Assembly: GCA_965649765.1 (NCBI GenBank)
Contig: OZ287752.1
Coordinates: forward strand, 24,242,001 to 24,306,000
Direction: 5' to 3'
DNA length: 64,000 nt
From: Bispira polyomma
Taxonomy: Eukaryota
Every line of letters starts with the position of its first letter. Positions within the stretch are counted from its first letter, which is position 1. This document shows, in pieces, positions 2,233 through 59,127 of the stretch. A model generated the notes under the pieces. It had not been told where the DNA came from, did no database searches, and saw nothing but the letters and a program-made list of their open reading frames with translations. The position numbers and the translations under genes are program-made.

Positions 2233-2565
2233 TACTGGGCCAGGACCAAGTTGTGTACACAGAACTCTCATCTACTGCTAACCTTCCGTGTGGTTCTGCA
2301 TCCAGACTCTTCCCAACTGATGCTGTCAGAGTTTACTGGTACAGAGGGGATGATAATACAGACATCTCAGCCAGAATACTGCACCAGCAATTTATTAAAC
2401 CACAAACTATATACTACAATAACCACACCTCTCCTAAATACATGTGTAGTTCTGACAGAGTCCTCAGTATCAGTGATGCAGAGAACAATGATGGGACACA
2501 CTATGTATGTTCTGCATTTGGTGCATCAAGGTCATTCAATTTTCATGTAGAATTGATAACCTTAG
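2233..2565 (+). CDS. Gene A exon 2, V-like Ig domain
   Basis: 333 nt, AG/GT, phase 1-1; LPC...WYR...LSI...DGxxYxC Ig pattern. Confidence 0.9.
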
Positions 2566-3959
2566 GTGAGTTTTCATATATATACATGTATATATACTTA
2601 TATACTGTTTATGTAACCACTATGTTTTATCAAAATGAGGCAGAACAAATAATTTGTAACAAGGATGAATCAATTAAGAAACAATTATGCTGCTTTCTTC
2701 CACAGATGCTTTTATTTATGCATTAGCAGCCCCCTCCCCACATCATCCTTTAGTTATTGTCACACCTTTTGTTACTAATCTCTTTTCAGAAGGTCTGGTG
2801 CCACTTTTTTTAACAACAATGTGTCACTTTACAATATTATGTCACATGACTTATGTAGTAGGTCTTCAGCTTGATAAACAAACCTACAACATATCTCTTA
2901 GGCTGCATTGGTGGTTCCCCTCATTTTAAACTTAAAACTTTTTTACCCTGAAACTGGTGCATATATATTAACTTGTGAAAAATACAGACTTAACCCTATT
3001 CTTTTGCCATCTCGTGTCTTACAGCTGTTACCTCACTTAAAACTTGACTTTACTATTTGCATTTCACGTGACCTCTATATTAACATTCAGTGTACTGTCT
3101 ATAACAAATCCTCCTCAGGAGACTACTAACTCAGTCCACCAAAAATAATTTTGAATCTAATTATCAAAATTGAATACCTCTTTTAATCTCTGCTGTTCTT
3201 TCTGTCTATCATACCACTGGGCAATCACAAAACAGGTACCTTTTCAGTATAGCTTTACTTATATCCACCATAACCATTTAACATTGAATGCAAATGGGAA
3301 TGATGTTTTAAGAAATATTATTTTCAATCCCCTTCCTCACTGCAGCTTACTTATTTTGTTTTTACACGTTTTCGTTTGTGGGTAGATAGCCAAGTTTTCC
3401 TTGGCTCCCAACACTAGGCATTTTAGTTAACGTTCATAGTTTGTCTTATAGGGTTTAGGCAATCTAGAAAATTTTCTGGATGTCCACCGATTGTGTTCTA
3501 AGCATGTTGTTATGTATCAGTGTGTATAGTGGGTGCTGTTATTTTGTGTTGGTGACACGTTTATGTTCAGTTTGTGGACATACCAAATGTGTAACTATTT
3601 AGATTCATGTTAAGTTCATGGTTGATAGTACAAATGACCAAGTTATATTTTAAACCATGTCAGCTCATATGTTGATGGTCTGGAATTGGCATTATAATGT
3701 TAATAACATTTTCTACAGGGTGAATTGGATTGTTCTGTTGAAACTTGCCTGTTATCAGGGGATTACTGTTGCGTCATGTACATCTATTGGGGCTGTCCCA
3801 CTATCCTAATAATAGCTCCTGACTCACAGATTGTCCCAAATATTGTCCCCATTAATTTGGTAATTCTATTGTGCACTGATTCAAGTTATACTTTAACAGC
3901 ACCTGTTACCACTAGGGTGATATTTACCACATTTGTCCTTCTGACTTTGCTTGTGTCCA

Positions 3960-4046
3960 TTGACTACATTGTTGGCTCACTAATTCTGTTGTTGCACTAT
4001 AGAAAATGCCTAGCATCAATAAAGTGCATTAAAAATGTATAATAAT
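3960..4046 (+). mobile_element. L2 3'-end fragment
   Basis: Matches ...GATGCCTAGCATCAATAAAG...TTAAAAAT..ATAATAAT terminus of the 12637-13269 copy. Confidence 0.7.
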
Positions 4047-4110
4047 CAAAATTTATCAACACAGCAAACTTAGATAATGTTAAATTTTCCATTTGTATTA
4101 CTTATTTTAG

Positions 4111-4434
4111 TGTCTCCATCTCAACCAGTACTCAGTGGTTTAGTTATTGAAGAAAACAATCCCACAACAGTTCAATGCACATTACCGTCAGTAAAGCCAG
4201 GTGTGGGCAGTGTGGTGTTTACAGTGACTGTAGATCCAGACTTCAGTGTACAGAGTTCAGACAGTGATTTATCAGATGGATCAGCAGATCCTACAACAGG
4301 GGCCTTGTCTGTAACTTACTCAACACAGATCTCACTGCAGAGAAAACACAATGGACAGCAGGCTCTGTGTGAGGTGGTCTGGAGGGGTGGGGAGAAAACT
4401 GTGACATCAGAGAGGAAAACTGTGTTTGTAAGAT
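4111..4434 (+). CDS. Gene A exon 3, C2-type Ig domain
   Basis: 324 nt, phase 1-1; VQC..KP...HNGQQALCEV, nephrin/CD80-like C2 pattern. Confidence 0.9.
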
Positions 4435-4745
4435 GTAAGTAGAGTACAATTGTAAACATACAATATACAGCAGGCTGTGTGTTAGGTGAAAATGAAGGAA
4501 AACTTTAAAACACAATGGAGAGCAGGCTGTGTGTGATGTCTAAGTGTAGAAATTGTATGAAACACAATGGACAGCCGGTTTTGTGTGAATTGTAAGTGTA
4601 GCATGTGAATAAAAGTACAATAAACAGCAGACTATGTGTGAGGTACTAATACAGTACAAGTAGGAAATACAATGAACAGCAGACTTTGTATGAGATGTAA
4701 GTATAAACTTAGTATCAAATACAATGGACTGCAGACTATCACATG
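4435..4745 (+). repeat. Exon-3-derived ~50-57 bp minisatellite (gene A intron 3)
   Basis: Repeated AAACACAATGGACAGCAGGCTGTGTGTGAG..TAAGT units. Confidence 0.8.
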
Positions 4746-11556: not shown

Positions 11557-11659
11557 CCAGACCAATTTTTGTATGACTAGGTCCTACCGCACAAATATGG
11601 AACAGTCACTCTTTAGCTACAGTGCTTTATATTCAGTTTAAATATTCCACAAAGAAACA

Positions 11660-12245: not shown

Positions 12246-12343
12246 TACAACATGTTTATGGGTGTTACGCAGTCTTCTATTTTAGAATTATATATAATTG
12301 TATCAATCATGCATTATATATTTCATAAAATCTTCACATATAG

Positions 12344-12634
12344 TTTCAGTTTCCAGCATCACTATGACACAGTCTCCCTCTGGTCCAGTCTCTGAGAACA
12401 CAGTGGTGACCTTCATGTGTATGACTGATGAGACTGAACCTACTGCTGATGTGGTGTGGACTGTAGGAGGGAACAGTGTCAGTTCTACTAGTGACACTAC
12501 AGAGGTGGGGATGTATAATACAGAGAAAAGGACAAGTGTGTTAGAGCTGAAAGTGGACAGACAACTAAATAGCAAGGATGTGGAATGTTATGCGAACAAG
12601 GAAGTCAGACAAACAGTAACACTGAATATTACAT
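12344..12634 (+). CDS. Gene A exon 4, C2-type Ig domain
   Basis: 291 nt; FMCMTDETEPTADVVW...VECYA; donor altered by L2 insertion. Confidence 0.85.
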
Positions 12635-12636
12635 GT

Positions 12637-13269
12637 CCATGGACACAGCGATAATTGTGGCAAATGCCCTTGTGAGTAGCCGCCTCGACTACTGCAATTC
12701 TCTCTTGTACGAAGCAAACAAGTCAAACATTAAAAAGCTCCAGTCCATCCAAAACTACCTATGTAGGGTCAGTTTTCGCCTGGGTTGTCGCACAGATGTC
12801 ACTCCTTACCTCAAAAAATTACACTGGTTGCCCATTGAATCTCGAATTTTGTTTAAGATTCACGTTACCACTTTTAAGGCTGTAGTCACTCAACAGCCAC
12901 CCTACCTTGCCTCCCTTCTTTCCTTCAGTAACCACAAGAGAGGAAACAGACTCTCTGTCACTTCGGTCAGACCAATCAGAAAGGCGGGTTTCAGAGCATT
13001 CTCCACTGCAGCTCCACGGTTATGGAACAGTCTCCCAGTCGACCTCAGATCAGTTGATACACTTATCGGTTTTAGGAAAAAGCTTAAAACCTATCTTTTT
13101 AATCTTGCCTACCCACCTTAGCTTTCCTCGTGCACACTCCCACTTCCTTCCTTACGACTTTGCAATTTCCACGGACTTAATGATTGGACTAATGATTCTG
13201 CTGTTGCGCTTTAGAAGATGCCTAGCATCAATAAAGCGCGTTAAAAATCCATAATAAAAATAATAATAA
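12637..13269 (+). mobile_element. Young 5'-truncated L2 LINE with 7-bp target duplication TACATGT
   Basis: Open ANALVSSRLDYCNSLL...LHWLPI...LWNSLP...LKTYLF; (AAT)n tail; TACATGT at 12630-12636 and 13270-13276. Confidence 0.93.
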
Positions 13270-13280
13270 TACATGTACGT

Positions 13281-13532
13281 ATTATGTTTAGGTGGATTAT
13301 TACGTTAGTGGGACATCAACAGTTAGATATACAGGAATACTGGATGTTCGATTTAAGTAACAGATTAGATGGTGTGTTATGGTTGCGAAAAATAATTAGT
13401 CTCTAATCTCTGACTAATTATTTTTTGCAACCATAACACACCATCTAATCTGTTACTTAAATCAAACATCCAGTATTACTGTATATCTAACTGTTGATGT
13501 CCCACTAACGTAATAATCCACCTAAATATAAT
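13281..13532. repeat. Near-perfect inverted repeat, 121-bp arms, 10-nt loop
   Basis: 13281-13401 is the reverse complement of 13412-13532 with about four mismatches. Confidence 0.95.
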
Positions 13533-13758
13533 TAGTCTATTTATTCTGATTACATTCTGAATACATACATTGAATTACATTGGCGTATGACCAAAAAAAA
13601 TCAAAATTATTTTATGACAATTATTATTACAGTATCATTATGAAATAGTTTACGTTTGAATCAGTTTGACTTGAAATATTAGACATATTAATGTTGGAGC
13701 ACGAAACTTTGGTGTTTTTATTTTTGTTTTGCAAGGAGTAATTTAAATGCACTTTTAG

Positions 13759-14034
13759 TTCCTCATACTGTAACAGTAACACAGACTCCATCAGATTTAA
13801 TCACAGAAGGCAATGTTTTAATACTGACTTGTGATGCCCAAGGTGGTAATCCTCCTGCAGTATTGTCTTATAACTGGAAATTTGTACCCCGTTATGAAGT
13901 CTCTAATGATCTTACTGAAGTTAACAGACAGTTAGTAATTCCTATGGCAGAAGATATACACTCAGGAGAATATAGTTGTGAAGCAACCAATACTGATGGT
14001 AGTGGTCGTAATGGTGAAGTAGTCTTAGTACACT
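13759..14034 (+). CDS. Gene A exon 5, I-type Ig domain
   Basis: 276 nt, open: LILTCDAQGGNPPAVLSYNW...HSGEYSCEATN; not in the ORF track, homologous to B exon 5. Confidence 0.9.
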
Positions 14035-14436
14035 GTTAGTATTAGTACAACTGATGCACAATACAACTGATTTTTAATTTAATAAAGATGGCTAATTTAT
14101 CATATTTCAAAAAACAAAGCTATATACATCATAAAATATGTTGTTTATGCTGTATACTTAGTAGTTTACATGTTAGTCATTACCATTTGCAACACATGTA
14201 CAAAAAGACAACTTATTTTCCTTAAAACCGTTTGTTGTTGACACACTTATTTTTCTTAGAAAACTTGCATGTAATGTGCAACAGTATGTTTTACAAAATG
14301 TTGATACATTTCAAAAATACAATGGTTTTAGATTTATAGTTTAAACACAGCAAAATATTTGAACAAAGAATATTTATAGTAGTCATGTTTAAATACATTC
14401 TAGCTTCTTACGGACGTTGGATTATATGGTTTTCAG

Positions 14437-14745
14437 ATAGTCCTAAGGATGTGAGCTCAGACATCCAAAAGTTTTCATACACAACTCTGAATAGTCATGC
14501 CTATTTGAACTGTACAGCAAGTTCGTACCCAAAACTCAACAAAGACAATGTTATCATAGACCATATGAACTCAAACCTCAACCCTGACCAGATACAATTT
14601 CTGCCGCAGGCTAATGAGATGGATCGCATTGTTATTCAAGTATTATTTGACTCAGTCGTCAAAAGTGATTTTGGAATATACAAGGTTATCCTGAACAATG
14701 GTATTGGAGAGCAAACTGTGATTGAAATGTATCTTCGTGAACCAG
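14437..14745 (+). CDS. Gene A exon 6, atypical Ig domain lacking the second Cys
   Basis: 309 nt; YLNCTASSYP...DFGIYKVILNNGIG. Confidence 0.88.
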
Positions 14746-14857
14746 GTCAGTTTTCATATTTTATTATTTTACTTTATAAATGACAACAAACATACAATTA
14801 ATATTGACATTCAAGCTCACATTTTAATATTTCAATGACACAGCATTTATTCTACAG

Positions 14858-15154
14858 GAAACCCAGAACCCCCACAGCATCTGACAGTGGAATCAGCCAC
14901 TGCTGTCTCCATCACATTGTCATGGATTGCAGGAAGATCTGGAGGAGTAAATCAGAGATTTACTGTTTATTATAGAAAAGATGGGGAAAGTAATATCAAT
15001 TTTGATAGTGGCATTCTGGATCCTGGTCCACACACTGAAGTGAATCATAAATTACATGATTTGCAGCCATAGACAACATATTTTGTTAATGTGAGAGCCA
15101 TCAATATACATGGCAAAAGTGATGATTTGGATGATGTTGCCATAGCCACCCTTG
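14858..15154 (+). CDS. Gene A exon 7, FN3 domain with premature TAG at 15070-15072
   Basis: 297 nt; PEPP..L.V..TAVSITLSW..GRSGG..Q.F...LQP*TTYFVNVRAIN. Confidence 0.85.
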
Positions 15155-16268
15155 GTAAAAGTCATTCAAAATACTGCCATTAAAAACTATTCAATATAAA
15201 TTTAGCATAACAGTGTAAATTTGAATATTTAAGTGAAATATGTTATAATATTTATGACTCTTAATAAACAGCATAAAAATACATTTAGAGTAAATCGAAA
15301 AATGCTGAACTAATAAGTATTAAAATATATTTATTAAAAAATCTTTGTTTTTTCAGATATTCCAGTTCTACACGGATCTACTGTTGCTGAAATTTACTCA
15401 GATATTACTCTATTGGCCTAATATAACAGGTCCAATACTCTGAAATGATTGTTGTAAAATGTACACCTTCTCGACCGATATGTCTTAAAATATTGAGCCC
15501 CAGTACTGCCCCTTCACATTTAGTTATCCCAGATTCTAATATTGATGTGGAATATTACCTTATCATTTACCAACAAGAAGAGGAAGTTTACAGAAGCAAA
15601 TTTTCATTCATAGATAAAACAGATAAAAAGCCAGCTTGGTTTCTGCAATTACATAAGAACTAAAATTGTCAGCCTTTATTTTTCAAAAGTGTTGGTTTAG
15701 TTTGCAGAAACATTTAAGTTCAATTGCAGATTCTTGGGTTAAATGAAATACAATACAATTTTCTATTGCAATGTATATATAAACCTATGTTACAGTGTAT
15801 TGTGAACAAAATGATGCAATTTCTGCAAAGGGAAGCACTGAAATAGGATTCCTCACTGGCTTAATTATATTGGCAGTATCAACCTTTGTGCTTTTTTCAA
15901 GTATTATTGCTTACATTATTTACAATAAGAGACATCACATGTCAGCAGAAAAAGATGCAACCAGCAATGTATGTGTTAGTCATATTTTATTGATGCAATA
16001 AGTAACAGTAGTATGCAATTAAACAATAAATTATTTTTGTAATTATTTTTGGACACATCAGTGCACAAACACATGTTAAGAAATGATTTTTAGAAAGTTT
16101 CAGAACCAGTATATTACAACAGTCCTGCTGAAATGTCTTAGTCAGCTCACTATGAAATGACTCAACATGAGGAACCTAAACCTCCAGCTGAATATGTTGA
16201 TTTGAAGGTATAGATAATAAATGCATATGTTAAAACAAATATGTTCGTTTTGTATGTGTCATTTTGCA

Positions 16269-27300: not shown

Positions 27301-28083
27301 CATAGATAAAACAGGTAAAAGCTAGCTATTGTTTCTGCAATTAGATTATAACTAAAGCTATCAGGCTTTATTTTTAAAAGTATTGGTTTAGTTTATTTAG
27401 AAACATTTTGTGAAATACAATACAATTTTCTATTACAATTGCTATTTAAACTTATGTTTCAGTGTATTGTGAACAAAATGATGGAATTTCTGCAAAGGGA
27501 AGCGCTGAATCAGGATTTCTCACTGGTTTAATTATATTGGCAGTAACAACCTTTGTGCTTATATCAATCATTGTTGCCTATATTATCTACAAAAACAGAT
27601 CTCACATGTCAAAGGCGGAAAATGGAACCAGCAATGTATGTATTAGTCATATTTTATTGATGCAATTAGTAACAGTGGTATGCAATTAAATATGAATTAC
27701 TTCTTATTTTACCTTTTGATACATCAGTCCACAAAGCATATTAAGAAATGATTTTCAGAAAGTTCAAGACCCAGTATATTACAACAATCCTACTGAAATG
27801 TCTCAGTCAGCTCAATATGAAATGACTCAACATGAGGAACCTAAACAACCAGCTGAATATGCTGATTTGAAGGTATAGATACATATGTTAAAACAAATAT
27901 AATACTTTTGTATGTGTAGTTCTGTGCAAGATAATTTGCATATTGATGATATTTGCATTAGTATATTTTACATTTCCAATTTCTCAGTGTGGTTATAAAC
28001 CAGATATTTCTGAGTCTGATTATTGCCACATTTATTTTTTATTCCAGACTATGACATATGAAGACCTGGGTCCTGCATTGTAG
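21316..28083 (+). CDS. Gene B: intact Ig5-FN3-FN3like-TM tyrosine-motif receptor, ~828 aa (nephrin/Sidestep-like IgSF)
   Basis: 11 phase-compatible exons totalling 2487 nt with no internal stop; only irregularity is the exon 6 donor. Confidence 0.9.
21852..22184 (+). CDS. Gene B exon 2, V-like Ig
   Basis: 333 nt, phase 1-1. Confidence 0.92.
22536..22636. mobile_element. Small palindromic MITE (Harbinger-like termini)
   Basis: GGGCCCGTA...TACGGGCCC termini plus internal GGGACTTAGCCAG..CTTAGGCTTAA inverted pair; absent from the paralogous intron at ~48630. Confidence 0.75.
23688..24011 (+). CDS. Gene B exon 3, C2-type Ig
   Basis: 324 nt, open. Confidence 0.92.
24130..24700 (+). repeat. Exon-3-derived minisatellite (gene B intron 3)
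   Basis: About ten degenerate ACACAATGGACAGCAGGCTGTGTGTGAGG-TGTAAGTATAGTATAAGTAT units. Confidence 0.85.
24892..25191 (+). CDS. Gene B exon 4, C2-type Ig
   Basis: 300 nt; FTCVTDEANPTATVTW...VKCVV. Confidence 0.9.
25804..26079 (+). CDS. Gene B exon 5, I-type Ig
   Basis: 276 nt; LSCEAQGGNP...YKW...HAGEYSCVATN. Confidence 0.92.
26174..26485 (+). CDS. Gene B exon 6, atypical Ig
   Basis: Ends 26482 (GA donor) or 26485 (GT donor), both phase 1. Confidence 0.85.
26604..26900 (+). CDS. Gene B exon 7, FN3
   Basis: 297 nt; PEPP...SW..GRSGG...LQP...Y.VSVRAIN. Confidence 0.92.
27045..27314 (+). CDS. Gene B exon 8, degenerate FN3-like domain with C-x6-C
   Basis: 270 nt, open, homologous exons in A and C. 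Confidence 0.85.
27463..27635 (+). CDS. Gene B exon 9, transmembrane
   Basis: GFLTGLIILAVTTFVLISIIVAYIIY followed by KNR. Confidence 0.88.
27759..27872 (+). CDS. Gene B exon 10, cytoplasmic KVQDPVYYNNPTEMSQSAQYEMTQHEEPKQPAEYADLK
   Basis: 114 nt, phase 0-0, same length in A and C. Confidence 0.85.
28048..28083 (+). CDS. Gene B exon 11, TMTYEDLGPAL*
   Basis: CAG acceptor after pyrimidine tract; homologs at 17548 and 54278. Confidence 0.8.
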   Translation, partial: TMTYEDLGPAL

Positions 28084-42800: not shown

Positions 42801-45800
42801 TACCAGTTAATATAACAGCATAAACACAATCTTCAACCAAATATACTTTAATTTTTTTTTACTCTAAATCGAGTTGTTTCTTCCATCACCACTTGTTATT
42901 CACGTCTTTTACAAGGTTCGTATATAGCAGTATACCCCTGAGCATGTATATGCTGACTGGATCCTTGAAATTTGAAACTAGAGATACAAATGACATTAGC
43001 CATATGACTTTTTTGTACCTACTTGACTTTCAATGGGGTGGCCAGCAGTTAAAATCTTTACATTTTGCAAACAATAAAGTACTTTTCCGCTACCTCTCCT
43101 GAGCTTTGGCACATGCTTTTCTAAAGAATTTTAACCTTCCTTTGCAGGATAAGCATTAGCCCTGCTGTGCACCAACATTTTTCACATTGATGCACATACA
43201 ATTGTCCACCAGAAGGATATGCTTTGTAAATACAGTTTACTCTTTGAAAGAATAGACAAGGAATACTGAGATTCACTAACTACCCTTTCGCTTCACGGAT
43301 TCCGTCAAATTGTATGTTTTTTACACAATTTCCCTCTGGTGTATACCTAAATTGCCATGAAATAGCAGTCTGAAAGAAAACTTGAGCTTCTGCTGTTCGT
43401 CTCCTCACTGGCTGAAGAGTTCAATTAACCTGGGGCCTGTATATCGAAGCCTTTGTTACAGAAACAAGTTCGTTAGGTCTCAGTTAAGGCTTAGTTTGCA
43501 AAGTTTAAAGTAAATGAAAACCTTAGTTAGTTTACTGTGGATTTACTTCATTCGTAAAACCCCCAAAATTGAACGACAACTCTAGCCCTGTCGTTATATT
43601 AGCAGAACTTGGCCGCTAGCTGACCTAGTATGCCCACCCATGGTCAGGCTTAACAATTTTCACTTTTAAAAGGTTTTAGCTTATTATTTAATGATTGTAA
43701 ACCTCTACTTATTACTAACTTGTACAAAATATTGTCTCAAACTATTATTTTACTGTCTTACACACCTAAACCGTACTTACCTTATTTCTACTACCTTCAA
43801 AATTAGCTGGACTGTCAAAATAAAATTCTCTAAAAATATATTATATTTCAGAGGCCAACATAATATATTTAATTCATGTGCAGTAATATCACATGATATT
43901 TATATAATCTATGGCAAATAAAGTGCTCTGTTCTCATGAATGAGCAAGTAAAATAAAAAATCCATGCTGTAATATCATACCTATAATTTTTTATGAACTA
44001 TATAGTCAGTGTGCAACAATAAGGTATTAATGTGTTTTTTATATTACTTTTCTTGCAGAAAATGTACATCTTTATAACTTATAACTACATCAATATGAAA
44101 TATCCTTCTTAGATAATATGCAATCTTATGTTTATATAATGTAGACATAATTTCTAAAATATAAGCATCAATTAATCACTATATGAATATGTCATAATAA
44201 CTTGTTATTCATTTTCATTCAGATTAATATATAAAACTATTGTCAGTTTATCCTGGGGTTCTTTGTCATTGCAGACATATCCTGATGCTGTTGTTCAACA
44301 GTCTGTTTAAGGGCTATTACTGGTGGCATTTTGTTAATGGTCATCAGATACTGTTTTGTCCTGATCAGATACTAAAAAGACTTCACCAACAGACATGCCT
44401 TTTACATGTTCTTGATCATTCAGTAACTTGCCTTCTTTTGTGCACTGATTTGAAGAGTAGTTGGGCAGATCAGTCAATTGCGGAAGGATAGTTCATCTAT
44501 TACTTTAAGATCATTGTCTTCTCTTGGTAGAACACCATTTTGCCGACTCAGGCCATCTACATTACCCAACTTCCTGCCTGCTCTATGTTCTATAGTAAAG
44601 TCATACTGTTGGAGATAGGTAACCCATCTTGGAATTCTACCAGTTGTTTTCTTTTGATCAAAGAGCCACTTTAAGGCTATATGATCTGTTACTATCTTGA
44701 AATTATTACCTTTTAAGTATGGCTCAAAATGTTTCACTCCAAGTATACAAGCTAAAGCTTCTAGTTCTGAGACACTATATTTCTTCTCTGCATCTGTGAA
44801 TTTCTTTGCAGCATAAGATAAAACCCTCTCCTTTCCATCTTGAATCTGGCTAAGGATCATGCCAGCTCTATGGACACTAGCATCAGTATACAGTATGTAT
44901 GGCTGCTGGTATCTGGCGTAAGCTAGTATTGGGGAAATAACCAAAGCATCTTTCAAATCTTGGAAAGATCTTTCTTGAGCTTCTCCCCAAACAAATGGAG
45001 TGTCTAGCTTTGTAAGTTCTGATAGGGGTAAGGCCTGTTCTGTGTACTTCTATATGAACCGACGATAAAAGCTTGTGATTCCTAAATAACTGCCTAATTC
45101 TCTAAGAATAACCTGGCAAGTATCTGGTAAAGGCTCTACTCCCTTTGCACCAACTACATTCCCTAAAAATCGCACCTCCTTGCAACAGAACACACACTTC
45201 TTTGGTTTTAATTTGAGATTTGCAGCCTCTAACCTATCAAAAACAATTTTCAATCTTTCTAAATGTTCATTGAAAGTCTGTGAATAAATGATAATATCAA
45301 GATAGACCAGGCAAATTTTCCATACAAGACCTTGGAGCACACTAGTCATAAGTCTTGCAAAAGTAGATGGTACATTCTCCAATCCAAAAGGCATTCTTTC
45401 AAACTCATATAAACCATCATGAGTGACAAAAGCAGTCAGTGGCCTGGATTCTTGAGCCATCTCGATTGGCCAATATCTGCTCTCCATGTCAAGAGTAGAA
45501 AAATATGAGGCCTTTGAACTTCCCAAAGATTCCATAGAATCATCCACTCGAGCTATTGGATGACTATCTGGTATAGTATTCGAATTCAGAATCTCCAGGA
45601 ATCATCTGGCTTTTTAACCATAACCACCGGTGAAGCATATGGACTACGAGAAGGTCTTATAATTCATATTATAATATATATGTCTTTTCACTCATATCTC
45701 GTACTTGCTGTGATATTTCATCTCTTATTCTTGGGTTGCTGCCATAGGGAGCAGACCTAAATGTTCTAGGTCCTAGGTTTATTTCATGTTTAAGAACATG

Positions 45801-48800
45801 TTTAGGGTACATCCTAATTCTTTCCCTGGCACTTGAAAAAGGTTTCTATTATCCCACAGAGCATCTTTTAACTGCCTTTCTTCCGACTCAGTAAGCGAAC
45901 CATTGCTCCATTTAAACAACTCTTCAAATTCTTGTCTTGAAATGGTGTTTTCTGTTTTGGTCTCATAATTACCAGCATACCCACTTGACTCTATGACTTG
46001 TACACAATCCTTCTCTCCAAGCACCTCCAGGTGTGCAACACAATCACCCTTTTCAAAACACATAGGAATATCTTTTGTATTCCTTAGCTCAATTAGCACA
46101 AGCGGATTTCTTGGTTTGATGTTAGTAATACTACACCTGATATTGGTAGATTGTAAAATTCCAAAAGGACAGGGATCTATTTTTACTACAGCAACAACAT
46201 CTAATGGTTCTTTTAGAGTTCCATAAAGCAATGTCTCTTCTAGTGGATTCAGCTGATAATCAGTTTGCATGTACACATCAAGTGTCTCTGGTATTTTGAT
46301 CGTGTTCCTGTCAAAGTCCAAGCATACACCAAATGCTTCTAGGAAATCTATTCCAAGTAAGACTGGGTAGGGCATGCAAGTAACATACTTCAATTTCCAA
46401 CTAATGATCTGACTTCCTATAGTAAATGCAAATGGAATCACCCCTTGTATGGCTGTATTTCAAGTATGGGAAACATCTGTAAAAGTTCAGGTCCTGCCAG
46501 AGATATAGTAGCGCCTGAATCAACCAAGGCATAAACATTCTTATTATTCTTTTTTAACTTCAAAAATGTAAGTCCACTAGTTCTATTGTCATTAGGGGTG
46601 AGGGTGAGAGCAACTAAGACCTTCTCTGTTGCGCCCAAGACCCCACCTGAGGCGCACTCCAGTTTAAATGAGCATCCTGTTGCTTGAAACTTTGTTGGTT
46701 TCTTTGAAATTGTGGACAATGCCGTTTAATATGACCTCTTCTATTGCATTTGAAGCACACTAAATCTCCATGTTGAGGACGTCTCACACAATTACTAACA
46801 GTATGACCGTAAACTTGACATCTATTACAGAACATTTGGCAAATTCCTCTCCCTGGTGCAGTGTTTTGATTGGGCTTATCCCTGGTCAAGCTACTCTTTA
46901 GAAAAACCATGTCCTCCTCTGTTGATTGATAGTTTCCTGGAGCTCTCCAATTAGCTTTGTAAAATCTTCCAATTTCTTTAGGTGGTTTTCTTATAAAACA
47001 TATATCCTATTACCTTGGTGGTCTTTAGGCTTGAGCTTCTCAATACTTTCAGCCAGCCTGGCTTTGCTTTCAAGATCATCAACTGTTTATGGCTGGTGGC
47101 CTATAACAAAAGCTTTAATGCCAGGCAATAATCCATGTAGGATGATACTCCTGGTCTCAGCTTCTCCTTTTTGTAGTTGGTCACATCTCTGTCTCACATT
47201 AGTAATACAACTCTCCATTGATTCTGTAGGGAACTGTACCCTCGAGAAAAGCCCTTGCTCCTTAAGCCATGTCAGGTTGTTTGCATTTATAAACTTCTCA
47301 GAGAATGCTGCGTGCACTCCGTCCTAATCTTGATGAACATCTTCTGGCAAACTCCCATACCAAACCTCCGCAGCCCCTTCTAAAAGCAATCGATACATTC
47401 TTGATTTCCTCTGTTCATTCATATTACAGTACTCTGCATAACTCACAAAGCGTTTCATCCATCGTTTGGCATCTTCACAGGAAGTTCCTCTAAAAGGAGC
47501 AGGCCGTAATGCAGCAGTTTCTGGAAAAGGTCCATGTTGTTGAATAGCATCCTGCAACTGTGTGTGATATTCCTCTTGTTGATCTCTTTGGTCTGCAAGT
47601 CGTTGTTGAAGCTGATCCTGGAGCCCACCCTGTACATCCCCTTGATTAGCGAGTCGGTGGAGTTGAGCCCCCAATTCCTCAATATTTTGAGCCATTAGAT
47701 CTAGATATGCCATCCTTGTCCTCAAGTGATAGTAACTTGTTACCCTCGGAGGCTTTGTTTGAGCTTCCAGGATGCTAAATTAAAATTATAAGCAGTTAAA
47801 ATTACAGTTGCTGTTGTCAGCACAGTTCAAATTCATACTGTGGACACTTCTATTGCCACTGGGTAGCAACCATGTTCTGCTCGGATATGTGTTGTTACTT
47901 CCTTGGTAGTTACCCTTTTAAATTTACAGTAGGGGCAGCCATATGTCCATGCAGTAGTGGTGACATTTGACCAATGTATTGAAATGGCCCTGATACCAGA
48001 AAGTGTGGTCTCTTCATCTGCGTAAGGGAAGCTGGTAGAACTAACATCGGATGATTATATATTATCTTGCATGTTTGTTCATGTCTCATGACTTCTTATG
48101 AAATACCCGGCATCTCCACCAATTGTTATGAGGTTATTTTCAGTGGTCAGTCTTGACCACTTGCTTGTCAGTTCAACCCCATATCGGCTGGGATCTTTTA
48201 TCTCAGAGAAGTATGAAGACAAGAAAAGATAAACTTGATCACTGTCACAACATTTATTAGTAAACAGCACGACACTTACATAATAATTATCCAAGTAAGA
48301 GATGTAACCATAACAGTTACATGTATCCAACTGACTCCCACTAAGCTTTATTAGACTTTCTCTAGCTTCACTCCAGCCTCCACTCCAACTAACTGTGTGT
48401 CTCTGGACTAAGCTTTATATAGTGTTAATAGCATTTATAGGGATCTAAAGTTATTTATGGAATTTAGAATGTCATGTGGGTATGAAGTTTAGGAAGTTCC
48501 TTTACATAACATTCCATTGGTGTCAAGTGAGTTATGGCACTGGACACCAATGGAATGTGATGGCATGTATTGAATGTTATGTAAGAACAAGTTCTAATGG
48601 AATTTTGGTCATAACAATACCTACCGTTAGAGTGTCTATGATTTACAGTAATTTTATATACAGGTGTTGATTCCACAGGGGACTGCCGGTTCACTAATAT
48701 CATTAGGTCCACCTTAAGACATTTTAAGGATTTCACGTTTAGTTATACTTTCTGTCTGTCCATCAATAAAAAAATACATAATCTGAAATTGGAATTGATG

Positions 48801-51800
48801 TATTTTTTTTTATATTTTGTGGGTACATGTGCATATATATAAACTAGTATATATGAAACACTATATGAGTAACACCTGAGTAACACATATGACGTTGCAC
48901 AGATACCTTATGTCATTTGTTCAAATAAAAGACTTTAGAACAAATTTGATAATAATTATATCATGTATGTGTGTATACCTTTTTACATGTAGCCATAGTG
49001 CAAGCAGTACTTATATCCATATTTAAAAATACATACAAGTCAAAAAAAATTACATAACAACAAGCGTAAGTATAGTTTCCTTAATCATATTGTGTACATT
49101 GTTTTGTTTTATCTGCTTTATTATTACTTATTACTTAGAATGAATGTTTACTCAGATTAATAAGTTGTTGTTGCTTCAAGTTTTCGAAGTTTAGAAACTA
49201 AGTTATTATTTCATTATAAGTTACTTACATATTACAATAATGTAAAATTAATAAATGAATGTAATTTAATAATAAATCTAGGTAATGTTAAATTTACTAT
49301 TTTAAAAACTTATTTTAGTTTCTCCATCTCAACCAGTACTCAGTGGTTTAGTTTTTGAAGAGAACAATCCCACAACAGTTCAATGCACAGTACAGTCAGT
49401 AAAGCCAGGTGTGGGCAGTGTAGTGTTTACAGTGACAGTAGATCCAGACTTCAATGTCCAGAGTTTAGACAGTGATTTATCAGAGGGATCAGCAGATCCT
49501 ACAACAGGAGCCCTGTCAGTGAATTACTCACCACACATCTCACTACAGAGAAAACACAATGGGCAGCTGGCTGTATGTGAGGTGGTCTGGAGAGGAGGGG
49601 TAGGAACTGTGACATCAGAGGGGAAAACTGTGGCTGTGAGATGTATGTATATATTAAGTACGAAACACAATAGACAGCAGGTTGTGTGTGAGATGTGAGC
49701 ATAGTATAAGTATAACAACACAATGGATAGCAGGCTGTATGTAAGATAAAAGTATAGTATAAGTATAAAAGCACAATAGACAGCAGGCTGTGTGTGAGGT
49801 GTAAGTATAGTATAAGTATAAACACTATGAACAGCAGGCTGTGTGTGAGGTGTAAGTATAGTATAAGTATATAAAATTCGATGGACAGCAGGCTATGTAA
49901 AAATTGTTAGTATAGTGTAAGTATTAAAACTCAATGGACAGTAAGCGACAATGGACAATGCGAAGTGTAAGTATAGTACAAGTATATAAAACTCAATGGA
50001 CAGCAGGCTGTGTAAAAATTGTTAGTATAGTGTAAGTATAAAAACTCAATGGACAGTAAGCTGTGTGTGAGGTGGTCTAGATCGAAGGGAACTGTAACTT
50101 CAGCATATGAAAGTGTGGCTGTGAGATGTAAGTATAAGTATGAAAGACAATGTACACCAGACTGGGTATGAGCTGTAAATATAGTCTAATTAGCAAAATA
50201 CAGTCAAGTCTAAGTGTGATATGGTTAGAGCATACTACTAACAAAATTAATGATATATCAGATTTATTGATGATATATCAAAAACAGTTTTGTAATTCAA
50301 AATATTTGTTGATATGATAAAAACTGTATCAATGTCAGTATACATGAGGGTTATTATATGGTTTGTTTGATAACCTTGTTTTATAAGGTGTTCTACTATT
50401 GCAGTTTCAGCGACCAGTATCATCATGACTCAGTCACCCAGTGGTTTAGTCCCAGAGAACACACTAATAACCTTTACCTGTTTGACTGATGAAGCCAATC
50501 CTACTGCTACTGTGACATGGACTGTAAATGGTAGTAGCACCAGTTCTACCAGTGACTCTACTGTAGATGATGGTGTTAACAGTGCGGTGAAAAAAGAGAG
50601 TGTATTGATACTGACTGCAGAGAAGGGATTTCATAATAAAACAGTCAAATGTATGGTCAGTGAGAACACAGGAGTGACAGCTGCAGAAACATTGAACATA
50701 GCGTGTAGGTATTTGTAGCATTTACATGAAATTGTCCCTCTTACTTTAACATATTTAAATAAAGTGCTAAAACATGTGATTTATGCTTTAACTAGCACAA
50801 TTGTTTGAAAGTTAAACATTGTGTTATCGGCAACTATTTCAAGATCACTCTAGTAGTATCAGATTTATTCAGAATGTATTTTTGTACCTAATTTAACTGA
50901 TCATCACTATTTAAACAAATGTTTGAAGTGAATTTTTTAAATATTGCCATACAAAGCCTAGCGAAGATATATTATTCATATTGCTCAATACCGTTAAAAT
51001 TTTCTGTTCATTAAATAAGAAACTGTTATCTAAAGACTGAAATGATCAACCAGAATTATTACAATTAATGTCATAATTGTTTTTTTAATCAGCAGAAAAC
51101 TATTGAAAGCAAAACATACAGCAAAACAAAAGACCAGTAACTGCTTCATATATGCTACTGTCATTTTAGTATTAGTGTGTGGTTAGCAAGGCTCTAATGT
51201 TATGTATTTCTGTGTTTGCTATGGTATAATTAAATTCAGTGCGTGATATAATCGGAAAACTACCCAAGTGATGTATATTAAAAAATTATATGACGAAAGA
51301 ACATAAACAGTACTATATAAGCCTAGGAGGGTGAGTATTGTGCATTTTATCTTTTTAAGTCATATCATTTTTAATATACACCAGAAGTGTAGGTTTTCGT
51401 TTTTATCCACTTATAAAATATCATTACATTAAGTTATATAGTTAAAAATATAACATAAACAGTCCGAAAAGGGTGTAAAATATTAAAAATTCAAGACAAA
51501 ATAAACAAAAAGTACTGACTTGCTACCTTAAAGAATTAACTTCAAATAGAAACTTCTACCACTCTAAAAATCGCATTTTGTTCACAATATAATTGAATAA
51601 TGCTTATATTTTCTACATATCGAAATTTTTAAACAATAAGTTGTTTACTTTGACAGTATTAAAACAAACCCAAACTGTATAAATTCTTTGTTTACGTTTC
51701 AAAACCTTCCATTATGACGTCACAATACAAATTTGAAAGCCAAGAAGTACAGAGTTGGTACCATAAAGAATTAACTTCAAACTCATATTTATAAGGCACT

Positions 51801-54322
51801 AAAACATACCAGTTTAACATACCATTATGTAGTTCAAGGTTTATATTTTATGTTAACTACACTTTTCTTTGTATCACCAGGTCTGTATCAGCCAAACGTT
51901 ATTATGAGGTCACAGTGGATAATAAATGTATTTTTATGTTTCTATTTATCAATGCTCAAAATTTTTTACATTTTAGTTCCCCATGAAATAATGATAACCC
52001 AGAGCCTATCAAATCCTGTTGTTAATGGAAATGCTTTAATATTATCCTGTGAAGCCTACGGTGGTAATCCATCAACTGTTTTATCATATAAATGGACTTT
52101 TGTTCCCCGTGATCAAGTTTTTAGTGTTCTTACTGGAGATTCAAACAGACAGATTGTATTCATTGCACAAGATAAACATGCTGGGGAGTATAGTTGTGTG
52201 GCAACTAATGCTGGTGGAAGTAGCTATAGAACCCATAATGTCATCATAAACTGTGAGTATCAGCAAGACTGTGAGCGTTTGTCTAAGATAGATATTTATC
52301 TGAACCTTATTTTGTGAGTTAAAACATTATTTTCAAACTGATAACATATATCCCTGTAATGTTTATTTCAGATAGCCCAGTCGATGTAAGTACAGCTTTT
52401 CAAAAGGTATTATATGTAAGCACTGACAGTCCAGCAGTCTTGAACTGTTCAGTAAAATCTCACCCACAGATCAGTCAAGATGACATCACAATAAACCACA
52501 TGAACTCAAATTTGAATACACAGTTGATAGAAGTTACACCAGTCATAGAAAAAATAGACGAGGTCCTGGTGCAAATAATTTTCAACCAACTGAGTATCAG
52601 TGACATCGGATTATACCAGATGATGGCCAATAATGGTGTAGGAAATGACTTACTCATTGAAATGGATGTCAGAGAACAAGGAAGTATATTTGAGATATAA
52701 TTATATTGACAGTATTGTTGTTCAACCAATATGCAATGGAAATGTAATTAAAGTTTTAGTTTATGTCTGTAAGTACCAATGTATTAAATTGACAAGTAAA
52801 CATATTACAGGTATTCCTGAACCTCCACAACTGTTGAGGGTAGAATATGCCACTGCCATTTCGGTTACATTTTCATGGATCACTGGAAGATCTGGAGGGC
52901 CAAGCCAGACATTTACTATATATTATAGACAGGAAAATGACACCAATATATCCTTCCAAAGTGATATTGTAGATCGAGGTTTATACACAACTGTTACTTA
53001 CACCTTACAGGGTTTACAACCAATAACTTTATATTACGTCAGTGTTAGAGCTTTAAACACATATGGAAGGAGCCTTGATAAAAATGATCTACAAATAAGA
53101 ACTTTAGGTAGGTAAACAATTAAGGATGAATGAATAATGGACATTAGTTTGATGCTGCACAATAACAATTAAACAATAGGCATAATTATTCTTAAGTAAA
53201 ATTTATGATGCATATTTATTGCATAACATTTGTACATTTATTAGCTAAGATTCTTAAGTAATTATTTACTTTTCATTTTTTTAACTTTTTTCAGAAATGC
53301 CTGTCCTGGATGGTCCACTCACTGCAGAGGTATATTTTGGTTTTACAGTGTTCTTTTGGCCTAATATCACAGGAATCTTTTCCAGAATCGTTTTGATGAA
53401 GTGTGCTGACTTGGCTGACAATTGTCAAACTATGCACACAACAATGGCTAGCCCTTCACATTTTGTGATAGAGGATCCTTCAGAAAGTGATATCTTTTTT
53501 ATATGTATTTACCAGGGAAATGAACTAGTTTTTAAAAGAAAATTTGAAATACAAGATAAAACAGGTATTAATATTAACTGTCTGTAATCTTACAGATTAC
53601 AGCTCAAATGCAATACTTGATATTTTATGTAGAAGATATTGTAGTTAACTTTGCAGTCACAGAAGCAATAGCATATTTAAACATTTAATTTACTTCATTT
53701 ATTAGAGCAATCTGAAATCACTCCCACTGAGTGTAATGCTGACAAATCCTTACTGGCTGGAGTGATAGTTCTTGGAATCGTCATCTGTGTAGGTGTCATT
53801 GGAACTATTACTTTCTATTGTTGTATGAAAAGGAGACATGCCTCATCTAGTAAAAATGATTACAAAAAGGTAATTCTATATAGTAATATTCTATAAGTCA
53901 TTATGTCGATAAACTTCTATAACAAATATATCTTAATTATCTGTCTAAAAGTTCAAACTAAACATTTTGTGGTTTGTATATGTATGAGGTGTATGCTGAG
54001 TGTGTGAAAATTATCTTTGATATTTCATCTTTCATTCAGAAAGGTGTGGGTGTTGTGTATTACAATACCACCGATCAGAGACTTAAAATATCTGAATATG
54101 AGGAAACTAAATCTGAAGAACCTAAGCCCACACCGGAATACACTGACTTACAGGTAATATTACCATTGATGAATTATACGTCAATTACAAAGTAACATCC
54201 ATGTTTAGTGTATTTCTATATGTTTAATACGTCTATTGTAAATTTGTAAGGTTTATTGTGTTTTAATTTTCTTACAGATTACAGCATATGAAGAATTTGG
54301 CCCACCTGTGCAAAGGATTTAG
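30787..54322 (+). CDS. Gene C: predicted intact receptor (~828 aa) joining leader+V at 30.8-31.6 kb to exons 3-11 at 49.3-54.3 kb across a 17.7-kb TE-filled intron
   Basis: All 11 exons open and phase compatible (2487 nt); the long splice is inferred. Confidence 0.7.
31277..31609 (+). CDS. Gene C exon 2, V-like Ig
   Basis: 333 nt, phase 1-1, open. Confidence 0.92.
32150..32790 (+). mobile_element. Old L2 fragment
   Basis: Nucleotide similarity to the 375-1260 and 12637-13269 copies (LKLNPDKTEF-coding start, family 3' UTR). Confidence 0.75.
32990..37400 (-). mobile_element. Ngaro-like YR retrotransposon N2, degenerate
   Basis: gag-like 37353-36144 (CKFYQKGTC...HVCATC), RT 35810-34725 (YGFPL, SPFMTR, KLDISHAFRQ), RNase H (ELDACLTGLGG, HILGKLNVTADLLSR), YR 34174-33356. 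Confidence 0.9.
37440..39730 (-). mobile_element. Ngaro-like YR retrotransposon N3, 5'-truncated, near-intact RNase H and YR
   Basis: ORF 38875-39693 (RT thumb + RNase H) and ORF 37865-38851 (FRASN, HTFRRSGA, HGTW, WRY). Confidence 0.92.
40425..40525 (-). mobile_element. L2 3'-end fragment
   Basis: Reverse complement of the 13165-13269 3' UTR with (TAG/TAA)n tail. Confidence 0.8.
40685..41340. repeat. Two related CAGCACATTCCGACGTC(G/A)GCC units, probable DNA-transposon subterminal repeats
   Basis: 40688-40750 resembles 41152-41220. Confidence 0.45.
41380..41780 (+). mobile_element. PIF/Harbinger transposase C-terminal remnant
   Basis: Frame-broken translation YFLVGDDA..LAQNMMK / IFNYRLSSVHRIVESAFCIL / IVLAFACLHNLM matches the HARBI1-type FNYRLSRARRxVExAFGIL...LHN signature. 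Confidence 0.8.
41801..41867 (-). mobile_element. tRNA-derived SINE head or tRNA pseudogene
   Basis: Minus strand TGGTCCAGTGG (A box) ... GGTTCGACT (B box); acceptor stem does not pair. Confidence 0.6.
43830..44244 (+). pseudogene. Dead promoter/leader/intron-1 cassette of a fifth paralog (ATG deleted, V exon missing)
   Basis: 44005-44120 aligns with 21270-21425 with a deletion over the ATG; 44205-44244 aligns with 2045-2084; ETS motif reads GAGCAAGT at 43942. Confidence 0.75.
48104..48121 (-). promoter_or_regulatory. Primer-binding site complementary to tRNA-Ala 3' end
   Basis: Minus strand TGGTGGAGATGCCGGGTA, 2 nt from the LTR end; + strand reads ...CCCGGCATCTCCACCA. Confidence 0.8.
48124..48616 (-). 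repeat. 5' LTR (493 bp) of the Gypsy element
   Basis: TGTTATGA...TCATAACA inverted termini; minus-strand TATA (~48415) and AATAAA; host intron homology resumes at 48617. Confidence 0.85.
49319..49642 (+). CDS. Gene C exon 3, C2-type Ig
   Basis: 324 nt, open. Confidence 0.92.
49645..50185 (+). repeat. Exon-3-derived minisatellite (gene C intron 3)
   Basis: Same unit as in genes A and B. Confidence 0.85.
50405..50704 (+). CDS. Gene C exon 4, C2-type Ig
   Basis: 300 nt, open. Confidence 0.9.
51240..51930. mobile_element. ~0.7-kb insertion in gene C intron 4, unclassified
   Basis: Flanks align with gene B intron 4 (~25730-25800) but this block has no counterpart. Confidence 0.5.
51977..52252 (+). 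CDS. Gene C exon 5, I-type Ig
   Basis: 276 nt, open. Confidence 0.92.
52372..52683 (+). CDS. Gene C exon 6, atypical Ig
   Basis: Ends 52680 (GA) or 52683 (GT). Confidence 0.85.
52811..53107 (+). CDS. Gene C exon 7, FN3
   Basis: 297 nt, open. Confidence 0.92.
53295..53564 (+). CDS. Gene C exon 8, degenerate FN3-like
   Basis: 270 nt, open. Confidence 0.85.
53706..53869 (+). CDS. Gene C exon 9, transmembrane LLAGVIVLGIVICVGVIGTITFYCC-MKRR
   Basis: Phase 1-0, translated by hand (not in ORF track). Confidence 0.85.
54040..54153 (+). CDS. Gene C exon 10, cytoplasmic KGVGVVYYNTTDQRLKISEYEETKSEEPKPTPEYTDLQ
   Basis: 114 nt, phase 0-0. Confidence 0.85.
54278..54322 (+). CDS. Gene C exon 11, ITAYEEFGPPVQRI*
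   Basis: TTTTCTTACAG acceptor; homologous to TMTYEDLGPAL*. Confidence 0.8.
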   Translation: MTAYEEFGPPVQRI

Positions 54323-57040: not shown

Positions 57041-58404
57041 TCTAAGTAACACTGGATTATAAATTTTAACAAAGTTAGGTGGATTGATATGTTAGTTTTT
57101 ATTGCTATGTTAGTTTTTCATGTAGTACAGAGGTTAGAAAATATTTATATTACTGTGAGAATAAAATTATATTGCACCATGTTCGTGATGTTATTAAACC
57201 AATATAACATGATTTATATAAAGACATAACAACCCCCCAAAAAACCGAAATTTGGAATAGTCATATTACTTTGTACGGGTAAGCAAGATCTTATCTAAAA
57301 TTTTATTTAATTTTTGGTTGTTATCCCTATACTCATTTAAGACTATCGTATATTTTGCTAATATATATCCCATGTTTAAGTTAACTCTATTTACATCAAT
57401 TACAAGTCATAACGTAATTTAAGATTACCTAAAAGTTCTATATATGTTTCTCTCTAAGGTTATCGCAACTAACTTTACCAAGTAAACCACCCCTGTGGAT
57501 GAATTTAAGATTAACTTAACCCTTTAAGGTAGCCTTTGTTTATCTAGTTTGTATATATCTGATATGCCACCTACAACTGTATCTGCACGGACATTCATAT
57601 ACAACCAATGGTTGATGAACTGTGCAAAGTAGCCACACACAGGGCTAGCGTGGTAGATGCAACCCCTAGGTATTGACCACAAGCCAACAATCTGAGAATT
57701 CAAGAAAACAAGAAGGGACCAGTAAATAACTATGGGATGCACTGACCACACTAGAACTGTGTGTGGCTACATTGCAAAGTCACAAATGTTAAAACCAAGA
57801 ACATTTAAATGAACCATCAAACATCCAAATTGTATTTATGTTTTAATTTTACCAAACCTGTATACATATACTAAAACATAAAACCAACCCAAACACTTTA
57901 CTAAATTCCCAGTGTGGAGTATTTCATGTACTTTGTATGTGGAATCGTTTATGTTTGTATTTATAGCTTTAATTATGGTAATGGGGTGTGCCAAAATGTA
58001 CCATGTCTGAGTCATAATATTCTCTTGTATGTCTTACGTGAAGCAAACAATATTTTTACTGTTTTCAATGCGAACACTTGCTTTATGTTACATATGTTTA
58101 TCATGCCTCTTCTATCATTTAAAGTTAACTGTACACTGACCTTTAATTCAATTTTAGTCAAGATAAAATAAGGCCCTGTATTGAACGTATTGTTTTCTAC
58201 ATAAACCTCGCCAGGGATCTGTTTTAAATAAAATACTAAATGATTATTACAGTTCGGAGGACAACATATATATATTCAAATCATAAACAGTAAATATTGC
58301 ATGGTACTTATATAACCTAATATAATCAAATAAAGTGTTCTTAGTTGTGCGTCTTAGTTTTCATTCAGTTTTTGTCACACATTGGCTTCAAACCATTTAT
58401 TCAT

Positions 58405-58412
58405 GAGGAAGT
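58405..58412 (+). promoter_or_regulatory. GAGGAAGT ETS/PU-box-like motif upstream of gene D leader
   Basis: Positionally conserved across paralogs. Confidence 0.4.
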
Positions 58413-58510
58413 AAAGTAATACTATATACAGTATTATCATGTGATTTTCTATGGAGTATATGGTATATAGTGTAACAGTTAGGTATTAATGTGCAAGGAT
58501 AATGCATAAA

Positions 58511-58565
58511 ATGATTACCAGTATACAGTCTGTGTTATTTGTTTTACTTTTTGTGGAGAAAAAAG
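58511..58565 (+). CDS. Gene D exon 1, signal peptide MITSIQSVLFVLLFVEKK
   Basis: 55 nt, G|GT donor. Confidence 0.8.
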
Positions 58566-58794
58566 GTACCTCTTTATGAATTATTGCCTATTCAATATAG
58601 AATCTCCTTATTATATAATATGCACTATTATGCTTATAGAACATAGATATGTCTTGATAAGATATAAACATAAAATATAGCACTATATGTGATATGTTAC
58701 TATTATATGTGATTGTGCATTATGTTCTTAACATCCACAGAAGTAAATATTCATCATTGAAACGAGTAGTACATATTGTAATTTTTGTCCATAG

Positions 58795-59127
58795 TACTCA
58801 GCCAGGACCACATTGTGTACACAGAACTTTCATCTACTGCCAATCTTCCCTGTGGTTCTACATCCAGACCATTCCCAGATGATGCCACCAGATTTGACTG
58901 GTACAGAGGGAATGATTATACAGACATCTCAGCCAAAATACTGTCCTACAGGTTCAGTGATTCATCCATCAGATACTACAATGACTACTCCTCTCCTAAA
59001 CACACCTGTAGTTCTGACAGGGTCCTTAGTATCAGTGATGTAGAGAACAATGATGGGAGAAAATATATCTGTTTAGCATCTGGTGCTTTGGTGACATTTT
59101 CCTTTAGTGTAGAATTGATAACCATAG
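58795..59127 (+). CDS. Gene D exon 2, V-like Ig (rest of gene not in window)
   Basis: 333 nt, phase 1-1, open. Confidence 0.92.

Follow-up and report, generated by a model that had tools for sequence, protein, structure and literature searches.

Which parts of a repeatedly duplicated immunoglobulin (Ig) domain are free to change, which are held, and is the change driven by selection? The question is raised by a 64,000-nt stretch of the 1.04-Gb genome of the animal Bispira polyomma (G000:C5:24242001-24306000, + strand), hereafter the window, whose coordinates are used below. The window is AT-rich, with about 35% GC, and contains no runs of N. Four of its exons, in genes designated A to D, encode a V-set Ig domain. 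An original prediction, made from the letters alone, held that these domains are hypervariable only on the face built from strands G, F, C, C', and C'', and attributed this to diversifying selection on binding specificity. The exons are as follows.

2233-2565, + strand: V-set Ig exon of gene A, 333 nt, phase 1-1, codons from 2235, AG and GT borders
21852-22184, + strand: V-set Ig exon of gene B, 333 nt, phase 1-1, AG acceptor and GT donor
31277-31609, + strand: V-set Ig exon of gene C, 333 nt, phase 1-1, AG acceptor and GT donor
58795-59127, + strand: V-set Ig exon of gene D, 333 nt, phase 1-1, AG acceptor and GT donor

All four begin with two bases of a split codon and end with one base of the next, and phase 1-1 is the usual layout of Ig-domain exons. 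Residues are numbered by the gene B V exon, in which codon i starts at 21854+3(i-1), and the genes were analyzed as single exons throughout. Among 16 close paralogs of these exons, about 11% of V codons took replacements faster than silent changes, with a ratio of nonsynonymous to synonymous rates (dN/dS, or omega) of 3-4. We think it probable, from the sequences and a predicted structure, that this reflects positive selection for new binding specificities on the GFCC'C'' face of a set of tandem V-set receptors.

By sequence and model, the domain encoded by these exons is a V-set Ig domain. The V exons of genes A to D score 27.9, 31.4, 32.1, and 29.4 bits, respectively, with the Pfam V-set profile (PF07686), whose cut-off is 26, and every V-set hallmark that we looked for was found: the profile match, the cysteine of strand B, the tryptophan of strand C, the D-x-G/A-x-Y-x-C motif of strand F, and nine strands. 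C19, W35, and C92 are invariant in 26 paralogs, in which D86 is nearly so, and Y90 is kept in 15 of the 16 close paralogs. An AlphaFold2 prediction of the gene B domain, built on the 26 paralogs, has a mean predicted local distance difference test score (pLDDT) of 93.2 and nine strands that include the extra C' and C''. DSSP places these at residues 5-9 (A), 15-17 (B), 32-37 (C), 47-52 (C'), 57-60 (C''), 69-71 (D), 77-79 (E), 89-95 (F), and 101-109 (G). A Foldseek search with this model returned at least 500 V-domain matches, the best of them CEACAM N domains (template modeling scores 0.79-0.80, root-mean-square deviation 1.7-1.9 A, 15-17% identity), and its atlas look-alikes are generic V-set clusters.

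The division of the domain into constant and changing parts, as first described, was borne out in nearly every detail. The near-invariant blocks VYTE(L/I)SSTANLPCGS, CSSDRVLSIS, and VELIT are present as quoted in the four V exons, as are all the variants given for strand C, the C-C' region, and strands F and G. A recount of B against D gave the same 34 differences, over 110 aligned residues, and in the next exon (D2) 16 of 108 codons differ between B and C, as had been stated. B and D share an identical run of 24 codons (residues 7-30) with exactly the two silent changes reported, at codons 11 and 26, but that count is not unusually low: 2 of the 19 silent sites in the run have changed, and outside it about 10 of 53 (Fisher P = 0.5). 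By chance, all 34 B-D differences would avoid a fixed block of 24 residues with a probability of 3.6e-5. Among the 16 paralogs, 14 columns stand out as the most variable (entropy of at least 1.9 bits), and 13 of them lie within residues 31-60 or 89-110 (P = 2e-4). The alternation seen in strands F and G is also real: in F, residues 89, 91, and 93 vary and 90 and 92 are conserved, and in G, 100, 102, and 104 vary and 103, 105, and 107 are conserved. This fits the outward-pointing residues of one sheet.

Site models of codon evolution were fitted to the 16 V exons, for which the single-ratio model M0 gives an omega of 0.78. Comparisons of models without and with a selected class gave the following likelihood ratio test (LRT) values.

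16 V exons, one tree: M1a/M2a LRT 73.6, p 1e-16, 11.5% of codons at omega 4.3
16 V exons, three segment trees: M1a/M2a LRT 38.9, p 3.6e-9, 10.7% at omega 3.7
16 V exons, five 22-codon trees: M1a/M2a LRT 17.7, p 1.4e-4, 15% at omega 2.5
16 V exons, three segment trees: M7/M8 LRT 42.1, p 7e-10, 11.3% at omega 3.2
11 genes with a D2 exon and canonical splice sites: M1a/M2a LRT 15.5, p 4e-4, 13.5% at omega 2.7
D2 exon of 13 of the same genes, control: M1a/M2a LRT 1.15, p 0.56, no selected class
Distant subfamily, 8 V exons, replicate: M1a/M2a LRT 22.6, p 1.3e-5, 17% at omega 5.1

The M7/M8 comparison is the test that had been suggested along with the prediction, and its outcome agrees with diversifying selection: the class with omega above 1 survives the use of segment trees, and in five simulations of the null model M1a along these trees the LRT was only 0-0.9. 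The D2 exon serves as a control that shares the same background of duplication and conversion.

23690-24013, + strand: D2, the second Ig-like exon of gene B, negative control

Its omega is 0.59, and it has no class above 1. The replicate comes from a distant subfamily located at 18.4-19.2 Mb and on contig C2. In this subfamily the A/B and D/E parts are conserved (omega 0.35), and the C-C'' plus F-G part has dN 0.307 vs dS 0.255 (omega 1.21), with selected sites, in B numbering, at 38, 40, 45, 59, 61, 66, 93-95, 98, and 102.

Where do the selected codons lie? With one tree, posterior probabilities exceed 0.8 at residues 31, 34, 41, 44, 50, 52, 57, 89, 93, 98, 99, and 104, and with three trees at 31, 34, 41, 44, 50, 57, 93, 99, and 104. 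Residues 31-60 and 89-110 make up 52 of the 110 positions and hold 12 of 12 and 9 of 9 of these sites (hypergeometric P = 6e-5 and 8e-4, respectively). On gene B the two regions are the following.

21944-22033, + strand: codons 31-60 (C, CC' loop, C', C''), with sites 31 at the start of C, 34 in C, 41 and 44 in the CC' loop, 50 and 52 in C', and 57 in C''
22118-22183, + strand: codons 89-110 (F, FG loop, G), with sites 89 and 93 in F, 98 and 99 in the FG loop, and 104 in G

The pattern is that of a sheet face with its flanking loops and not of tip loops alone; in antibodies, variability sits in the tip loops.

A number of results weigh against selection as the explanation. A first alternative is that exposed residues of the C-C''/F-G half are simply unconstrained, with omega near 1, and that the class above 1 arises from unmodeled recombination among paralogs, from alignment around indels, and from a few chance sites. 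Recombination is demonstrated. In approximately unbiased (AU) tests a tree built from one third of the V exon is rejected by the other two thirds (p = 0.006 to 1e-11), and the V exons are thus mosaics produced by intra-exon recombination or gene conversion among paralogs. This rejection is what made partitioned site-model runs necessary, and the LRT, 73.6 with one tree, drops to 38.9 with three and to 17.7 with five, so that part of the single-tree signal is an artifact and some inflation may be left. In the one-tree fit, 56% of codons fall in the class with omega = 1, and sites 41, 44, 98, and 99 adjoin indels. The likelihoods were computed with our own GY94-F3x4 code and not with PAML or HyPhy, on branch lengths taken from the M0 fit and afterward only scaled. 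The contrast between V and D2 is confounded by the histories of the two exons, since the B-C dS is 0.47 for V vs 0.14 for D2 and dN/dS is about 0.47 in both. A test in the manner of fixed effects likelihood (FEL), with site-specific silent rates, finds 13 positive sites at p < 0.1, of which only 6 (28, 50, 57, 73, 94, and 104) reach p < 0.05; its 18 negative sites belong for the most part to the core of A, B, E, and G.

Average rates point the same way. By the Nei-Gojobori method, dN/dS of the V exon among the window genes A-D is 0.34-0.99, with B-D at 0.99, and the 16 paralogs, compared in all 120 pairs, average 0.40 for dS and 0.22 for dN. By segment, dN/dS over the 16 paralogs is 1.47 in the FG loop, 1.02 in the CC' loop, 0.95 in strand F, and 0.21-0.46 in the A, B, D, and E segments. 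A dS as high as dN in the variable segments had been named at the outset as a finding that would speak against selection. At the level of whole segments this is what the 16 paralogs show, the pooled variable segments having a dS of 0.47 against a dN of 0.30. The signal is site-specific. When residues are grouped a priori by structure, outward strand positions have an omega of 1.2 and top loops 1.1, neither significantly above 1; the C''D and EF loops are at 0.87-0.89, and the CC' loop (1.9-2.1, p = 0.035-0.055) is the sole class significantly or nearly significantly above 1. Values this near to 1 suggest that most of the surface variability is near-neutral and that selection acts on a minority of sites.

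The selected sites were expected on one exposed sheet. All of them do lie in the C-C''/F-G half and none in the ABED sheet, but their exposure is read from strand alternation around the buried residues C19, W35, L77, Y90, and C92 and not from coordinates. That variability is concentrated on the GFCC'C'' face also stands, but "only" was too strong a word, as high variability is also seen at residue 28, in the BC loop, and moderate variability, at a near-neutral rate, in the C''D and EF loops. A search of public sequencing runs found no RNA and just three sets of DNA contigs, all of one study. On gene B these sets have an exon depth inflated by cross-mapping of paralogs and unique introns that match perfectly, so that neither polymorphism nor splicing is readable from them.

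Against drift and artifact stand the persistence of a significant LRT even with five over-fitted 22-codon trees (p = 1.4e-4), the lack of signal in the D2 exon of the same recombining genes, the null simulations, which never exceed 0.9, and the freedom from indels of 12 of the 16 sequences. The signal is moreover repeated in an independent subfamily, in the same structural zones. Nor does the silent yardstick seem to be at fault. Intron blocks aligned locally with blastn are 70-82% identical between paralogs, a divergence of the same order as exon dS, which makes dS a fair neutral measure. Two earlier candidates were given up on this evidence: apparently saturated introns (p = 0.45-0.6 in global MAFFT alignments of 250-nt flanks), which the blastn blocks identify as an indel artifact, and an abnormally low exon dS. 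We consider drift combined with artifact unlikely, though it is the strongest of the alternatives.

A second alternative turns the question around and asks whether the one-sidedness stems from unusual constraint on the ABED sheet, imposed by a conserved contact in cis or with D2, or from recent gene conversion of the 5' third of the exon and of the D-E block. The conserved blocks are as follows.

21872-21916, + strand: conserved A/B block, gene B codons 7-21, dS 0.256, dN 0.080, dN/dS 0.31
22064-22093, + strand: conserved D/E block, gene B codons 71-80, dS 0.231, dN 0.094

The FEL-like test finds negatively selected sites at 11, 13, 18, and 20 in the first block and at 74, 75, and 77 in the second. 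Omega is 0.35-0.39 for ABED, including residues that are expected to be exposed, compared with 0.42-0.47 for core positions, a sign of purifying selection. The three near-invariant blocks have a lower dS than the remainder of the exon (0.29 vs 0.43), the partition covering the first third has the shortest tree (4.4 vs 6.2 substitutions per codon), and conversion between paralogs is evident. Yet the blocks are rich in silent changes, with a dN/dS of about 0.3, which argues that they are kept mainly by purifying selection on the protein and not by conversion alone. Constraint on ABED would also leave the class at omega 3-4 on the other sheet unexplained, and it is compatible with selection on that sheet. 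We judge it less likely still than drift with artifact.

That the V exons are drifting in decaying, redundant copies is very improbable: a truncated-looking fn3 exon and following exon in gene A, a stop in one D2 exon, a GA donor at one V exon, three V exons with no D2 exon found nearby, and the lack of RNA runs in the public data would fit, but all 16 V exons are open, 15 of the 16 have canonical splice sites, the core and ABED strands are under strong purifying selection, the signal persists in the 11 genes with a D2 exon and canonical splice sites, and decay predicts an omega near 1 throughout, whereas a third of sites are at 0.14 and a tenth at 3-4.

We return to positive selection on the GFCC'C'' face as the preferred reading and set out how it might work. 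The fold core and the A-B-E-D sheet are held by purifying selection, and about a tenth of codons, recurrently 31, 34, 41, 44, 50, 57, 93, 99, and 104, have taken replacements faster than silent changes. These codons belong to the CC' and FG loops and to strands C, C', C'', F, and G. The selected residues are predicted to face outward and to make up a single continuous patch of the G-F-C-C'-C'' sheet, with the conserved Y36 and I48 in its middle. This patch would be a putative surface for a ligand or partner, bound side-on as in domains of the CEACAM, CD2, and nectin types. Selection may then favor paralogs with new specificities, directed at changing microbial ligands or at self/non-self partners, and exchange of segments between paralogs could reshuffle the variants of the patch.

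What kind of genes carry these domains? Downstream of the gene B V exon follow, in order, D2 (which has no Pfam match), a C2-set_2 exon, an Ig_3 exon, a weak I-set-like exon, an fn3 exon (43.9 bits), one further exon, a transmembrane exon, and a tail with Y-x-x-L-type motifs. By this predicted architecture the genes are tandemly duplicated type I receptors with an N-terminal V domain, four Ig-like domains, FN3, a transmembrane segment, and a tyrosine tail. In a simple search for leader exons, which looked for a signal peptide followed by a phase-1 donor, no candidate recurred consistently in all of A-D. The D2 copies of the other three genes are located as follows.

4113-4436: D2 exon of gene A
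49321-49644: D2 exon of gene C, 18 kb downstream of the C V exon, past retroelement insertions
G000:C5:24314606: D2 exon of gene D, outside the window, with the remainder of gene D past the window end

The 18-kb gap between the V and D2 exons of gene C holds inserts at 33359-39693 (- strand) and 44477-47779 (- strand), which contain open reading frames (ORFs) of a tyrosine-recombinase (DIRS/Ngaro-like) retroelement and a long set of pol/gag-like ORFs of a long terminal repeat (LTR)-type element. In gene A, the fn3 exon and the next exon (14839-15069 and 15427-15660) are unusual: the fn3 frame stops early, past an L-Q-P motif, and the following exon lacks the first half that is present in B and C. 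The membrane-proximal part of this gene may be broken.

Silent divergence changes sharply along the genes. Comparison of the downstream exons of A (12298-15660), B (24861-27322), and C (50374-53584) showed mosaic histories. Between A and B, dS is low in D2 (0.13) and in exon 7 (0.14) but 1.0-1.3 in the four exons between them. Between B and C it stays at 0.14-0.4 up to and including exon 6 and then reaches 1.0-1.5 in exon 7. Gene B thus has the appearance of a chimera, with an ectodomain like that of C joined to a membrane-proximal end like that of A. Within the 333-nt V exon, dS varies about five-fold, from about 0.2 at codons 61-80 (22034-22093 in B) to 0.99 in strand G (codons 101-110, 22154-22183), a variation consistent with conversion tracts ending inside the exon.

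The window holds only part of the family. Six-frame searches of the genome found 16 intact close V exons, with 58-100% amino acid identity to B, all on the same chromosome at 11.4, 16.7-16.8, 22.3-22.5, 24.2-25.5, and 69.9 Mb, and about 15 more distant ones at 32-45% identity. Counted in this way, the family is several dozen genes, mostly on one chromosome. D2, with at least 57 copies in the genome, is the most uniform part of the family: where V exons have no more than 32-44% identity, that of D2 is still put at 73-78% or 73-87%. The dS of D2 is half that of V, and across pairs the two are uncorrelated (r = 0.09). This suggests that D2 is under concerted evolution or strong constraint.

Several members are irregular. 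Two V exons stand in series before one D2 at G000:C5:69947356 and 69941335 (L015 and L003; D2 at 69939815), and a second such pair is at 25425137 and 25419156 (L013 and L020), upstream of the D2 at 25417617; these V exons may serve as alternative first coding exons or be orphans. L003 has a GA donor instead of GT at its V exon, L040 (G000:C5:16775658) has an in-frame TAA in its D2 exon, and the V exon of L018 (G000:C5:16812509) is frameshifted. On another contig, C2, a tandem array at G000:C2:91136398-91137966 contains at least 6 fragments that match only the last 32-36 residues of D2, 4 of them with TAA, and adjoins an intact V and D2 pair. Outside this genome, a word-based protein search with the V domain gave one match of comparable length, at 62% identity, the length filter excluding full-length relatives. 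It is a V-set exon (L061 10001-10465) on a 508-kb contig, ctg30233l of ENA ERZ22147071, amid DDE-transposase ORFs, and could be a relative from another sample or species.

Is this a known family? CEACAM N domains are the best structural match, and they have no canonical intradomain disulfide, with downstream domains of the IgC2 type only. The Cys19-Cys92 pair is present here, which speaks against membership in CEACAM, as do the 15-17% identity, the four further Ig-like exons with FN3, and the invertebrate host. The likeness lies in a V-type domain at the N terminus, in tandem expansion of the receptor family, and in selection on the same face: in bat CEACAM/PSG N domains, positively selected sites lie on the C-F-G face, which serves homophilic and heterophilic binding (PMC5594555). 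A second parallel is found in Hydractinia Alr1 and Alr2, clustered invertebrate genes of the Ig superfamily with a V-set-like domain 1, one exon per domain, and exons that recombine between copies; positively selected sites in Alr2 domain 1 lie on the side with strands C and C', which has been read as a face for side-to-side binding (PMC8282982). Alr ectodomains differ in having three Ig-like domains and no FN3 (PMC8282982), and Alr2 variation is allelic polymorphism at one locus, whereas here it is divergence among paralogs. The resemblance to Alr drawn here is one of pattern.

In the CD2/SLAM and nectin families, it is the G-F-C-C'-C'' sheet of the membrane-distal V domain that makes the binding contact, and CD48 and 2B4 are among the Foldseek matches. 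These families have two (V-C2) or three (V-C2-C2) Ig domains and no FN3, an architecture that gene B does not share; they show no sequence relationship to it past the V-set fold, and they are small and conserved, in contrast to the dozens of genes here. Judged by its disulfide, its architecture, and its 15-17% identity, the family is not a member of CEACAM, nectin, or CD2/SLAM. Among vertebrate clusters of immune receptor genes, KIR/LILR, SIRP, Siglec, and the NITR of fish evolve by tandem birth and death with gene conversion and combine fast-evolving, ligand-binding tips with conserved tyrosine-motif tails. The Y-x-x-L-type motifs of the gene B tail are reminiscent of these, with no orthology between the families. 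Literature searches found no description of the receptor family, which is apparently undescribed so far. The one-sided pattern of selection is already known from CEACAM/PSG and Alr2, and what is new here is the family.

Vertebrate immunity, and the few invertebrate systems of self-recognition that are understood, depend centrally on large, fast-evolving families of V-domain receptors, of which to our knowledge very few have been described outside chordates, cnidarians, and molluscs. The family offers a concrete case, in which some nine positions would be expected to set specificity, with an unusually conserved opposite face and D2, and with exchange below the level of the exon. A more speculative proposal, which we regard as rather doubtful, is that it constitutes a germline-encoded recognition repertoire of a lophotrochozoan-type invertebrate, for self/non-self or pathogens, in which a conserved hydrophobic center of Y36 and I48, ringed by selected residues of the G-F-C-C'-C'' sheet, would act as a binding code, specificities would arise by point change and sub-exon exchange among dozens of paralogs, and D2 would be kept uniform. 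If this were true, the repertoire would correspond, on an evolutionary time scale, to V-gene conversion. The discovery of binding partners could allow the family to show whether face-on recognition by V domains with a diversified rim is a general convergent solution.

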